Assembly: GCA_964035545.1 (NCBI GenBank)
Contig: OZ037772.1
Location: 6,866,889 to 6,930,888, forward strand
DNA: 64,000 nucleotides
Source of the DNA: Bugula neritina
Taxonomy: Eukaryota > Animalia > Bryozoa
Direction of reading: 5' to 3'
Shown here: positions 12,501-50,248 of the stretch, piece by piece
Layout of the letters: every line of letters starts with the position of its first letter
Position numbering within the stretch: the first letter of the stretch is position 1
The notes under the pieces: generated by a model
The model's database searches: none
Told to the model about the DNA's origin: nothing
The model's input: the letters and a program-made list of their open reading frames with translations, nothing else
Program-made: the position numbers and the translations under genes

Positions 12501-13762
12501 TTATAGGTTTATGCTAATCATTATAAAATCAGAAAAACATTTTGAACCAATAAATGAGTTTAAAGAAAAATTGATTTTAATAAACATATACACCATGACC
12601 AGCTTTACATCATATATTGAAGGTAAGGGAAAAAGCAGACTGCTAATCATCAGTCTAGTAACAGTTCCTACTTCACTGACATTCATATCTGAACACAAGA
12701 CAGATGGGTCGTGTTACTCAGCCAATCACCGACAAGATGGTGACATACTCATAGGTACTCATAATGGAATACAATTACTGAGTAGAGATGGTAATGAGCT
12801 GAGTGAATACAGTACAAGTGAGAAGGAAGTATCAGAAGTAATAGAGACTTCTCAGAATGTCTTTACTCTTCACAAAGAAGTTGACATATCTAAAGTAGAC
12901 ATGTGTTTAGCTGGTGACATCACAAAGAGACAGCTACTGTTTCAGTTTGATAGAACGGGTCTTGGTGTAGCAGTAATGGCAGTCTCTGACAGATATGTTG
13001 TGGTGAATCATCCAGATACTAAACAGCTGATTCTCTATGACTTCATCACTAAACAGACAGAGACTATTCATCCTGATGTGTATCCATTTGGTCTACACTT
13101 TCTACCAGATGGTCATCTGCTAGGAGTTGGTAGAGGTAAACTGATAAAGTACAAAGTGGAGAATAGAAAGCTGACTACAGTCTGGACATGTGATGGTGTA
13201 ACAGGTGGATACAGTGTCTGTGCAGATTCTCATGGTCTCATCTATGTTGCTGGTAAAAAAGTGAAATTGCTTTACATCATTTCTCCATCAGGTGAGGTTC
13301 CTTAATAATGTACATATAACTGCGAGTAAAAAACTCCAAATCTAATTTTGATGTTCATCAAAAAAATTTTGAAATTTTTTAAAAAATATTAGCTAAATAA
13401 TATATATTGAATGATTTAGAAATACTCCTTTTTGCTGCAGCAAATTAGCATCTTCATATAATCACTGTGCTGAAATCTAATTTTGTGCATTCTCACTTCT
13501 TTTGCATAATTAGAAAACTCTGCCTCTAATTTACGAAATATGTTGGGTGCATTTTTTATAAAGTTTTAATAAACTTATTAATTTAAATTGTTCCTATTAC
13601 AATGTTCATTTGCATATATATTAAACAGGTTTTCATCTCAAGAGACTGACTCATGATAAGTTACCAACTGTATTTGGTGGAGTACCGAGTATCAGAGATG
13701 GGATACTGGCTGTACCTGGTTTGGGAGACAGGAAATTGTATCGTTTCAAAATAGAAACATAA
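3540..13762 (+). CDS. TRIM/RBCC + beta-propeller paralogue A, 5'-incomplete (3' half of exon 4 plus exons 5-7); possibly a pseudogene or RING-less form
   Basis: Exon 4 remnant 3540-3646 ([21 protein letters not shown]...EEM|gtgag); exon 5 7901-8177 (277 nt, IQRITNE...INT G|gt); exon 6 12623-13291 (669 nt propeller); exon 7 13629-13762 (..LYRFKIET*). Exon sizes and phases match copies C and D and there are no internal stops. Homology to exon 4 stops abruptly at ~3540, and no RING/B-box exons are visible in 1-3540. Confidence 0.75.
4872..4946 (-). other. tRNA-derived Pol III-like cassette (SINE head or TE-embedded)
   Basis: Minus strand reads GATGACTGCGTGG (A-box-like) ... GGTTCAACCC (B-box GTTCRANNC) ... 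then T7; ~75 nt. No clean cloverleaf, so not called a tRNA. Confidence 0.3.
5327..5719. mobile_element. Foldback/MITE-like element related to one end of the 755-bp CACAG TIR family
   Basis: Inverted arms 5349-5470 and 5598-5719 (cattagtccgaaaattagtacacacaggcatcctca... / ...tgaggatgcctgtgtgtactaatttttggactaatg). The arms resemble the ggcatcctcactaagaatatc end of the elements at 6694, 47856 and 54392. Confidence 0.7.
6694..7448. mobile_element. Non-autonomous TIR DNA transposon, copy 1 (CACAG termini, 2-bp TSD; CMC/EnSpm-like)
   Basis: Perfect 19-bp TIR cacaggatagttaagggca...tgcccttaactatcctgtg; TSD CA/CA; internal repeats ttcagtaccagtaaaata x2; two further copies in the window. Confidence 0.85.
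8625..8814. repeat. (TA)n microsatellite
   Basis: Pure TA run of ~190 bp. Confidence 0.97.
8815..9750. mobile_element. Non-autonomous TIR element inserted in a (TA)n tract
   Basis: Imperfect ~35-bp TIRs: tgtggctgctgtcatttttggtctcttggc... versus the reverse complement of the right end, tgtgatggctcccgtcagttttggtctcttggc. TA runs lie on both sides. Confidence 0.7.
9751..9952. repeat. Imperfect (TA)n microsatellite
   Basis: TA run with occasional TG/AA interruptions. Confidence 0.95.
10078..10134 (-). ncRNA. Second copy of the hammerhead ribozyme (inverted pLTR)
   Basis: Exact reverse complement of 11955-12011; the cleavage-site C corresponds to 10088. Confidence 0.85.
10586..11724 (+). pseudogene. 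PLE RT + GIY-YIG ORF, 5'-truncated, with a 1-nt frameshift near 11608
   Basis: The track ORF 10541-11629 takes its Met from the inverted arm. Restoring one C (present in the inverted copy, ccataggcagagg at ~10476-10488) gives [42 protein letters not shown], ending at 11724. Confidence 0.85.
11955..12011 (+). ncRNA. Minimal type I hammerhead ribozyme in PLE pLTR
   Basis: Stem I agtctaacac / gtgtaagatt; core CTGAGGA (11965-11971); stem II gtgcag-ttta-ctgcac; GAAA (11988-11991); palindromic stem III ACTATATAGT; GTC cleavage triplet ending at 12001. Confidence 0.88.
12061..12456. repeat. Imperfect (TA)n microsatellite
   Basis: ~400 bp of TA with TG/CA interruptions. Confidence 0.97.
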
Positions 13763-15053
13763 GTAATGAGCTAGGCTTATGTTGAACTTAGTTTCTAATA
13801 TGCTCTATTTGCTTATATTCTCATTCATGTTGTTCAAAATTTGGATTTGTTAGCTTAAATATTCCTTTACAACTACTTTTGGTAATTATTTACTCTATTA
13901 CTTACTATATTAGATACAAGAAATTGCTCGATTATAGATGAATAAAAATTTGTTTCATTTAGTAAATTACGCTCATCAGGTCATCATGGGGAGAGAAAAA
14001 ATTGTATACTTTTAAAAAAGCAATATTAACTAGAGCGAGCTAATCATGCAGTGAAATTGGTTTCTAACATGCTATATGCTTTTCTATTTTCATTTATATT
14101 GTTCAACATTTAGATTTGTTAGCATAAGTATTTTATTTTATATCTATATGTTTAGAATGATTCATATTTTTGCAATTCTGACGACATTATTTTAAACATT
14201 CCATATAAATGTGATTTCATAAACCCTGTAAGCAATCACAAGAATAATTTTTAAATTTGATTTGCACCAATAGCACATACTTCATTGTTGCACTGATATA
14301 AACTTACATTCAATCGTATATAAGTAATTATGTTTGTGAAATAGTTAGTTGCGTATAACCAAAGCTAGTGACTAGAATAGTTATTTTTTCTAATATATAT
14401 AATATATATATATATTTTTTTTTAGCAAAAAACCTTTTAAATATTTGATGAAATTTAATAAGAAATAAAACACACAAGTTTAAAGCTAGATATGTAGCCA
14501 TTACTTGTTTTCACTGAGCTAGCTAAAACTATAGTAAGTGTTTGCAAGTAGTTTTGGTCTTAACTTATAGTAGATAGAATGTTTGCAACTGTCTATTGCT
14601 GCATGCGAATAAGAAATATATATATAACATAGCATTTCTAAACACACTATTTAAACATGGAATATTAACCGTTAATTCATAATTTACAATCTAAATGCTA
14701 TTGCATACAACTAAATTTTCTATTAGTGAATATTCAATAATTACAAGACTGGCATGGAATTTTTTTTAAAACAGTCACCAAGTGGGGTAATGGAATTATA
14801 AAGTGGGATACTATTTATGATATATCACACGCAAAAACACTCGGCAATTATTATTATTATGCATCAACGTAAAATTGCGTGTATAACCTCCTATATCACA
14901 ATAACTGTATAATATTATAACATGAGAACATAACTGCTATAATTTTGGAGATTATATAGAAATAACAACATTCAAACTAGTTGACCTATATATAATTTAT
15001 CTTAAAGAGTATTTAAGTTTTGGAATGCATTCATTTGCCCAACTGGATTTTAG

Positions 15054-49600: not shown

Positions 49601-50248
49601 ATGTTGTGGTGAATCATCCAGATGCTAGACAGCTGATCATCTATGACTTTACCACTAACCAGACAGAGACTATTCATCCTGATGTGTATCCAGTTGGTCT
49701 ACACTTTCTACCAGATGGTTATTTGCTAGGAGTTGGTAAAGGTAAACTGATAAAGTACGAAGTGGAGAATGGAAAGCTGACTACAGTCTGGACATGTGAT
49801 GATGTAACAGAAGGATACAGTGTCTGTGCAGATTCTAATGGTCTCATCTATGTATCTGGAACATATTCGAAGTCCCTTTACATTCTTTCCTCGCAAGGTG
49901 TGCTTTATATCAATATCATGCTAAAAAGTATACTGTCTGACTATATTGCAAAAAATTGAGACTATAATATTATATTATCATTTTAAAACTTTGTAAGAAA
50001 CTCGATCAAGAAACACGTGCACATGCTCAGACATACAGCATGTATATGATATACTTTTTTTCATATATCAGTATTTACTAATGTAATTTCTAATATAATA
50101 TATATAAGCAGGTGTTCTTCTCAAGACACTGACTCATGATAAGTTACCATCTCTATTTGGTGGAATACCGAGTATCAGAGATGGAATACTGGCTGTACCT
50201 GGTTGGGAAGACAAAAAACTGTATTGTTTCAAAATAGAACCTAAGTAA
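43633..50248 (+). CDS. TRIM/RBCC + NHL-like beta-propeller protein, paralogue D, ~595 aa
   Basis: Exons 43633-43796 (RING ending CPTC), 44213-44372, 45262-45442, 46053-46252, 47065-47341, 49229-49897, 50112-50248 (..LYCFKIEPK*). GT-AG introns with the same phases as C; 1788 nt open. Confidence 0.9.
44531..45140. repeat. Compound (CA)n / CACATG low-complexity tract in intron 2 of D
   Basis: CA runs plus an internal duplication of cacatatgcagacgcacatacacctagta. Confidence 0.9.
47856..48605. mobile_element. CACAG TIR element, copy 2 (intron 5 of D)
   Basis: Same internal sequence as 6694-7448; left TIR has a 5-bp deletion; TSD CT/CT; empty site in intron 5 of B (~16813-16834). Confidence 0.85.

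Follow-up and report, generated by a model that had tools for sequence, protein, structure and literature searches.

We analysed a 64-kb stretch of the genome of the bryozoan Bugula neritina (positions 6,866,889 to 6,930,888 of the forward strand of contig OZ037772.1, assembly GCA_964035545.1), referred to here as 'the window' and numbered from its first nucleotide. The window is AT-rich (about 30% GC) and carries an array of genes of the TRIM type: stop-to-stop reading frames, combined with tblastn searches using the exons of one copy (gene C), revealed five tandem copies (A to E) of one gene type, all on the plus strand. We consider it very probable that this array belongs to a large family of TRIM-NHL-type E3 ubiquitin ligases that is restricted to bryozoans. 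A first-pass annotation of the same DNA, made from the sequence alone, had placed four propeller exons of 669 nucleotides (nt) and their terminal exons between positions 12623 and 50248, and all of them lie exactly where it put them. The exons of the array are as follows.

3503-3733, plus strand: gene A exon 4, 3' half, coiled coil (tblastn, 49% identity to gene C exon 4 from query residue 31)
7901-8177, plus strand: gene A exon 5, coiled coil (72% amino acid identity to gene C exon 5)
12623-13291, plus strand: gene A exon 6, propeller, 669 nt (blades 1-5 and the closing strand)
13629-13762, plus strand: gene A exon 7 (end of blade 5, blade 6 and stop codon)
15054-15330, plus strand: copy B exon 5 (second coiled-coil exon, AG acceptor kept)
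17394-18062, plus strand: copy B exon 6, propeller, 669 nt, intact
18420-18553, plus strand: copy B exon 7
21605-21774, plus strand: gene C exon 1, start codon and C3HC4 RING (Pfam zf-RING_UBOX, E 1e-7; gene model)
22027-22186, plus strand: gene C exon 2, B-box 1 (gene model)
23318-23498, plus strand: gene C exon 3, B-box 2 (Pfam zf-B_box, 25.7 bits against a cutoff of 24.1)
24853-25052, plus strand: gene C exon 4, coiled coil part 1 (gene model)
25485-25761, plus strand: gene C exon 5, coiled coil part 2 and linker (gene model)
27189-27857, plus strand: gene C exon 6, propeller (gene model)
32881-33014, plus strand: gene C exon 7 (gene model; whole gene 21605-33014)
43633-43796, 44213-44372, 45262-45442, 46053-46252 and 47065-47341, plus strand: gene D exons 1-5, RING, B-box 1, B-box 2 and coiled coil (gene model)
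49229-49897, plus strand: gene D exon 6, propeller (gene model)
50112-50248, plus strand: gene D exon 7 (gene model; whole gene 43633-50248)
60409-63746, plus strand: gene E exons 1-5 (tblastn and open frames), with the RING at about 60409-60578, B-box 1 extending to about 60992, B-box 2 at 61727-61907, and the coiled coil at about 62794-62993 and 63470-63746

Genes C and D each consist of seven exons that splice into intact open reading frames (ORFs) of 596 and 595 amino acids (aa), respectively. Their exons measure 170 (C) or 164 (D), 160, 181, 200, 277, 669 and 134 (C) or 137 (D) nt, with identical phases in the two genes and AG and GT dinucleotides at every exon boundary, and they encode, in order, a RING domain, B-box 1, B-box 2, a putative coiled coil and a propeller. 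The RING in exon 1 of gene C matches Pfam zf-RING_UBOX (E 1.1e-7; 32.2 bits against a cutoff of 25.2) and zf-C3HC4 (E 3e-6), and all eight zinc ligands are present in C, D and E. Exon 2 gives a weak match to an ANCHR-like B-box (E 0.03), and its cysteine and histidine pattern is conserved across C, D, E and P0045, a protein of the bryozoan Watersipora subatra that is described below. Exons 4 and 5, together encoding about 160 residues, match TRIM_CC weakly (E 0.12) and resemble a TRIM coiled coil in position and length. The start of the 3' untranslated region is conserved among the copies as well. Inspection of the C and D models revealed neither a signal peptide nor a transmembrane segment, and on that basis proteins of this type appear to be cytosolic. 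Gene E runs past the end of the window, with its propeller lying outside.

A small irregularity was noted in gene D. Past the donor of exon 2 (44376-44470) the reading frame runs into a second, degenerate version of the terminal part of the B-box 1 exon ('...[16 protein letters not shown]'), which corresponds to a small internal duplication that is now intronic.

The propellers had been described by the first-pass annotation as coupled to a constant RING/B-box module. This is true of C, D and the 5' part of E, but not of gene A, which retains half of the first coiled-coil exon (the first ~30 codons of exon 4 are not recognisable), or of copy B, which begins with the second coiled-coil exon. 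A sensitive tblastn search of positions 1-8300 found no RING or B-box in the 3.5 kb upstream of gene A within the window, and no RING, B-box or exon 4 is present between the end of gene A and exon 5 of B. Copy B is a cassette of exons 5 to 7 (within 13763-18553) that begins 1.3 kb past the gene A stop codon. The propellers of both copies appear free of decay, as they depart from the family at two (A) and four (B) of 121 framework columns, the family median being four. These RING-less copies could represent alternative 3' modules, decoys, donors for gene conversion or very young fragments.

Exon 6 of copies A to D measures exactly 669 nt in each case and is bounded by an AG acceptor and a GT donor. 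Its products are 77-80% identical in pairwise comparisons, with 141 of 222 columns invariant, and together with the short exon 7 it encodes a domain of 266 aa; the same exon 6/7 join has been annotated independently in a Bugula neritina paralogue (EB796_008252, referred to below as P0174). Nine short variable patches that had been singled out in the four copies (for example DGSCYS/NGRCMA/SGWCYS/TARCYS and GLGVAV/SNKVPV/SADEAV/SNNGAV) are present as written. The framework strings that had been quoted are likewise present, the sole exception being copy D, which reads [12 protein letters not shown]; to call this framework almost invariant was nevertheless an overstatement, given that 42 of 149 strand positions vary among A to D. 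A runs test for clustering of variable positions along the sequence, restricted to the four copies, was not significant (p 0.12). The claim that charge flips between copies, with A basic and C acidic, holds qualitatively: the net charge of the domain is +3 in A, +1 in B, −14 in C and −6 in D, and that of the top loops (defined below) is +1, +3, −7 and −1, respectively.

We modelled residues 14-281 of P0174, which span the full domain and are 79% identical to copy C, with AlphaFold2 (AF2) using a 112-row alignment. The resulting model (predicted local distance difference test, pLDDT, 92.7; predicted TM-score, pTM, 0.88) contains 24 strands that form six four-stranded blades. In an exhaustive VIA structure search, its best matches were the NHL domain of Brat (Z 26.4), Mei-P26 (26.0), TRIM2 (25.9), Lin41 (25.1), TRIM71 (24.4) and NHL-2 (24.1), with 238-243 residues aligned at 2.6-2.9 Å for the top three. 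Other six-bladed propellers rank closely behind these TRIM-NHL domains, and a Foldseek search of the Protein Data Bank (PDB) returned just generic seven-bladed WD40 matches (TMq about 0.65).

At the level of sequence, a single-sequence search with the exon-6 frame of C or A gave no match to Pfam NHL (PF01436), even at E values up to 1; the sole Pfam match of these frames was a weak one to a COPA/B propeller, and a single-sequence search of the PDB produced no NHL match. The family profile, by comparison, matched the NHL domains of TRIM3 (E 9e-16) and TRIM2 (4e-12), and also Thin, TRIM71 and Brat (range to 1e-4). Blade 5 ('[15 protein letters not shown]...SLYIIS..G') aligns to every NHL repeat of TRIM3, which fixes the strand register of the domain. 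The framework strings ([35 protein letters not shown]) correspond to strand A and the A→B 'D..G' turn of successive blades, and the N-terminal strand (SLTFISEH) most likely closes blade 6. The model, the structural ranks and the profile matches all indicate that the C-terminal domain, which had been annotated as a propeller, is six-bladed and of the NHL type.

Consecutive loops of a four-stranded meander emerge on opposite faces of the propeller, and in Brat and Lin41 the D→A and B→C loops form the ligand-binding (RNA) face. All nine patches map to D→A or B→C loops, which we refer to as the top face. Among copies A to D, 60% of the columns in top-face loops are variable, as compared with 36% in the bottom loops and 28% in the strands (Fisher p 1e-4), and columns with at least three states are concentrated in the same place (18 of 58 on the top face versus 13 of 208 elsewhere; odds ratio 6.75, p 3e-6). 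The same distribution was observed across 37 paralogues of the subfamily: their D→A and B→C loops average 1.34 bits of entropy, as against 0.61 for the A→B and C→D loops and 0.54 for the strands. The difference between top and bottom loops (p 3e-5) was reached by none of 205 circular shifts of the labels, and the autocorrelation of entropy peaks at a lag of 41, which equals the blade period. Exon 7 displays the same trend more weakly (ten copies). The variable sites therefore lie predominantly on one face and are not scattered over both faces and the core: the paralogues retain the scaffold, which consists of the strands and of the A→B and C→D turns at the bottom with their NHL 'D..G' signature, whereas the loops on the other face evolve quickly, differing in residue type and charge and, in some cases, in length.

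Codon analyses were made on 12 intact copies of exon 6, the four of the window and eight taken from public Bugula DNA, and point to positive selection on that variable face. A single Goldman-Yang ratio (model M0) gave a dN/dS (omega) of 0.76, and models that allow sites above 1 fitted far better: twice the difference in log likelihood was 83.5 for M2a versus M1a (with 7.4% of codons at an omega of 4.9), 107.6 for M8 versus M7 and 71.5 for M8 versus M8a. Sites with P(omega>1)>0.9 are found at exon-6 positions 2, 29, 31, 46, 68, 113, 114, 155, 211, 212, 213 and 222, and 9 of these 12 belong to the top loops (Fisher p 2e-5). Of the seven patches that lie in exon 6, five contain one or more such sites, the third (KEV/RED/TES/REG) and sixth (TGGYS/TYGYS/TDEYG/TEGYS) having none.

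To avoid circularity, we also defined site classes by structure alone. In this analysis the 44 top-loop codons yielded an omega of 1.56 (likelihood ratio test against 1, p 0.033), while the bottom loops and strands yielded 0.48 and 0.59. A tree-free Nei-Gojobori estimate over 66 pairs gave a top-loop dN/dS of 1.55 (bootstrap confidence interval 0.97-2.63) and about 0.5 for the other classes, with synonymous divergence (dS) equal over the classes (0.21-0.24). The diversification of these loops that the first-pass annotation had proposed is consistent with both treatments.

The N-terminal exons behave differently from the top loops. Among C, D and E, omega ranges over 0.08-0.66 and dS over 0.14-0.53 in the RING, B-box 2 and exon 5, and the module formed by RING, B-boxes and putative coiled coil (RBCC) is therefore under purifying selection and has not merely been homogenised. 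Gene conversion alone was ruled out as the source of RING conservation, because the RBCC exons do not have a lower dS than the propeller.

The family extends well beyond the window. A profile of the four exons matched 191 proteins at E<1e-3 among 1.8 billion cluster representatives, most of which are single-exon ORF fragments of 200-290 aa; the named proteins among these matches that were looked up are all from Watersipora subatra, and one of them (P0045, 619 aa, annotated as 'TRIM25-like') has the same order of RING, B-box, B-box, coiled coil and propeller. A word-based search with copy C returned 80 matches at E<1e-10, in which every named entry is a 'hypothetical protein EB796_... [Bugula neritina]' and at least two subfamilies can be distinguished (65-82% and 51-56% identity). 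At least 60 distinct exon-6 clusters are present in public Bugula data. No relatives were found in prokaryotic genome contigs or in metagenome contigs, and the relatives of the window's family that can be recognised by sequence are bryozoan. With five copies in 64 kb and, among the matches looked up, named ones in Bugula and Watersipora alone, the family is lineage-specific and tandemly expanded, as had been surmised.

Public Bugula neritina contigs also contain damaged copies, in two of which in-frame stops occur near the end of exon 6 (L002, 4522-5187; L003, 10031-10669), while a third contig carries a partial second exon 6 (L005, 14549-14820). These stop-bearing and partial copies point to gene death, and hence to a birth-and-death process, in the family. 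The possibility that one of the retrieved Bugula neritina contigs represents the locus of the window was ruled out: the TRIM genes on those contigs share 88% nucleotide identity or less with those of the window and are therefore paralogues, with only pieces of transposable elements reaching 96%.

Taken as a whole, these observations are best explained, in our judgement with somewhat better than even confidence, by a tandem TRIM-NHL family whose diversifying top face serves a germline repertoire of receptors resembling restriction factors. The family would grow by tandem duplication and by the birth and death of copies, and each paralogue would act as a germline-encoded intracellular receptor, with a top face that binds a different fast-evolving ligand. 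The RBCC module, probably dimerised through its coiled coil, would ubiquitinate that ligand or signal, and the repertoire would provide restriction-factor-like sensors for viruses, retroelements or other intracellular invaders. Such a mode of action would be like that of TRIM5alpha and the finTRIM proteins, with an NHL propeller replacing the B30.2/SPRY domain. We infer both the E3 activity and the binding of ligands by the variable face. The immune or restriction role itself is suggested by analogy with TRIM5alpha and finTRIM (PMC2657112, PMC3845644) and with TRIM56 (PMC6623546), and we regard it as a tentative assignment whose chances fall a little short of even. The label 'antibody-like', used in the first-pass annotation, goes too far except as an analogy, since the diversity is that of germline paralogues and nothing suggests somatic diversification.

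The finTRIM genes of teleosts and TRIM5alpha and TRIM22 of primates are tandemly expanded antiviral TRIMs (PMC2657112, PMC3845644). The bryozoan family shares with them a conserved module of RING, B-box and (here putative) coiled coil followed by a variable C-terminal binding domain, a lineage-specific tandem expansion, and positive selection on the surface loops of the binding domain. It differs from them in its host and in having a six-bladed NHL-type propeller where those proteins have B30.2/PRY-SPRY; moreover, those systems are known by their antiviral activity, whereas the bryozoan arrays are known here from sequence. A precedent for NHL-type TRIMs in innate defence is offered by vertebrate TRIM56, an antiviral RBCC protein with an NHL-like C-terminal region that mediates its antiviral function (PMC6623546). 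Both it and the bryozoan proteins have the architecture of an RBCC E3 ligase with an NHL-like C-terminus; TRIM56, however, is a single gene with no report of diversification. The nearest neighbours in the ESM Atlas by language-model features (0.95) are PF01436 NHL clusters of 91 and 592 members, mostly from Mollusca. These unnamed clusters, a lead that comes from features and not from alignment, hint that NHL expansions are widespread among lophotrochozoans.

Several observations weigh against the receptor-repertoire reading. The assignment of the variable face as 'top' is based on strand order and on the register of the NHL motif, and not on coordinates. The site models were run in our own implementation on an IQ-TREE topology, with relative branch lengths fixed and one free scale. 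The excess of omega over 1 at the level of the structural class is borderline (p about 0.03, with a confidence interval touching 1), and the framework itself evolves fairly fast (omega about 0.5). The paralogue trees of the three thirds of exon 6 differ from one another and 45% of informative site pairs fail the four-gamete test, which makes recombination or gene conversion between paralogues possible; such exchange may inflate the likelihood ratio tests. Within the window, two of the four studied propellers (A and B) have no RING. Finally, a search of public sequencing runs found no RNA run that contains the locus; it returned one DNA run, probably the source, and one 'metagenomic RNA-Seq' run with a low share.

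Some of these points would also be expected if the array were simply a young, redundant tandem expansion undergoing birth and death, in which the loops, as the least constrained surface, have drifted under relaxed constraint with no adaptive diversification. The high overall omega, with even the strands at about 0.5-0.6, fits that explanation, as do the pseudogenised or truncated copies (L002, L003 and the second one of L005 among the public contigs; within the window A and B, which lack 5' exons), the borderline class-level result and the susceptibility of site-model tests to recombination. We nevertheless consider it improbable, at roughly one chance in eight. The bottom loops are equally exposed and yet are conserved like the strands (entropy 0.61 versus 1.34 and omega 0.48 versus 1.56, relative to the top loops), and this conservation of the bottom face argues against a mere relaxation of loops. 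In addition, about 7% of codons fit an omega near 4.9 far better than 1 (as measured by M8 versus M8a), the exon 6-7 frames of A to D are intact with few departures from the framework, and each of the three segments of the exon, analysed on its own tree, shows the signal (M2a over M1a, p 4e-6, 0.002 and 6e-5). A PHI-type test gave no significant sign of distance-dependent recombination (p 0.29).

The incongruent segment trees and four-gamete failures bear on a further reading, in which the array is a cassette system: the exon 5-7 modules of A and B would be spliced as alternative 3' ends onto an upstream RBCC, or would act as short-tract gene-conversion donors that reshuffle the top-face loops. 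The AG acceptor kept on exon 5 of B and the undecayed propellers of A and B, together with those signs of possible exchange, are compatible with this reading, although we give it a low probability. Were it true, bryozoans would have a combinatorial, propeller-based system of variable receptors.

The closest structural relatives of the propeller suggest a different kind of function. Canonical TRIM-NHL proteins (Brat, Mei-P26, LIN-41/TRIM71, TRIM2/3, Thin/TRIM32 and NHL-2) share with the bryozoan proteins an RBCC followed by a C-terminal six-bladed NHL propeller with a top face built by the D→A and B→C loops, and they supply the best structural (Z 24-26) and profile (TRIM3, E 9e-16) matches of the bryozoan domain. 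The family might accordingly consist of RNA-binding post-transcriptional regulators, with a top face that diversifies to read RNA motifs in development and not in defence. The closest folds are those of RNA-binding TRIM-NHL domains, the variable face is the one that binds RNA in Brat and Lin41, and the top faces of A and B are neutral to slightly basic. However, canonical members are single-copy, slowly evolving, conserved developmental regulators with a basic RNA-binding face, whereas the bryozoan family comprises dozens of tandemly arrayed paralogues, with top-face omega above 1 and top-loop charge ranging from +3 to −7 (+3 to −14 for the domain). So wide a range of charge is hard to reconcile with a common RNA-binding surface like that of Brat. 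The bryozoan proteins also have no filamin domain, and their NHL repeats are too eroded for a single sequence to match Pfam NHL. We therefore rate a canonical RNA-regulatory role as unlikely, on a par with the cassette arrangement.

Tandem expansion with positive selection on one face is, on the other hand, expected under any arms race or self/non-self system, and the recognition may be directed at something other than viruses or retroelements: control of colony fusion and allorecognition, management of vertically transmitted bacterial symbionts, or reproductive or meiotic-drive conflict. Bryozoans are colonial and Bugula carries heritable symbionts (PMC7576161), both of which are compatible with such a conflict. 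The C and D models, having neither a signal peptide nor a transmembrane segment, make allorecognition at the cell surface unlikely, and the known TRIM expansions with a comparable signature are antiviral (PMC2657112, PMC3845644). We judge diversification in a conflict of this kind to be unlikely, if slightly less so than relaxed constraint.

Searches of the full-text literature turned up no account of diversifying TRIM arrays in bryozoans or of the NHL type. That tandemly expanded TRIM families can carry positively selected binding loops is known already; an NHL-propeller version of them with face-specific, blade-periodic diversification in Bryozoa did not appear in those searches. We know of essentially no described immune-receptor repertoire in this phylum, and the array, if our preferred reading is true, would supply a concrete and testable candidate family. 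The NHL top face has so far been known as a scaffold in conserved RNA-binding developmental regulators. If the reading holds, the principle represented by TRIM5 and finTRIM, in which a conserved E3 module is combined with a positively selected binding domain, would extend to that surface. A map for loop swaps and ligand fishing is provided by the six-fold periodicity, in which every blade contributes two hypervariable loops to one face.

The window also contains mobile and repeated sequences. Intron 6 of gene C (27858-32880) is nearly filled by a retroelement of the Ty3/gypsy type, which is inserted there and is not a part of the gene. In addition, a ~2-kb segment immediately upstream of the RING exon of gene C (19600-21604) occurs in five further copies at 78-80% identity, four of which are stacked ahead of the RING exon of gene E.

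28425-32363, minus strand: Ty3/gypsy-type gag-pol ORF, 1312 aa, uninterrupted (GC 43% versus 30% around it)
33658-34971: partial copy of the gene C upstream segment
52741-54051: partial copy of the gene C upstream segment
55173-56149: partial copy of the gene C upstream segment
56794-58109: partial copy of the gene C upstream segment
58428-60408: partial copy of the gene C upstream segment

Intron 5 of gene A holds an open frame of 364 aa (10535-11626, plus strand) with a 'YRDD' stretch resembling that of reverse transcriptases and a C-terminal GIY-YIG-like motif. The frame has no Pfam match and is probably a fragment of a Penelope-like element. Long microsatellites of the (TA/TATG)n and (CA/TG)n types, at 12037-12467 and 44465-45100, give rise to spurious ORFs of 100-157 aa on both strands.

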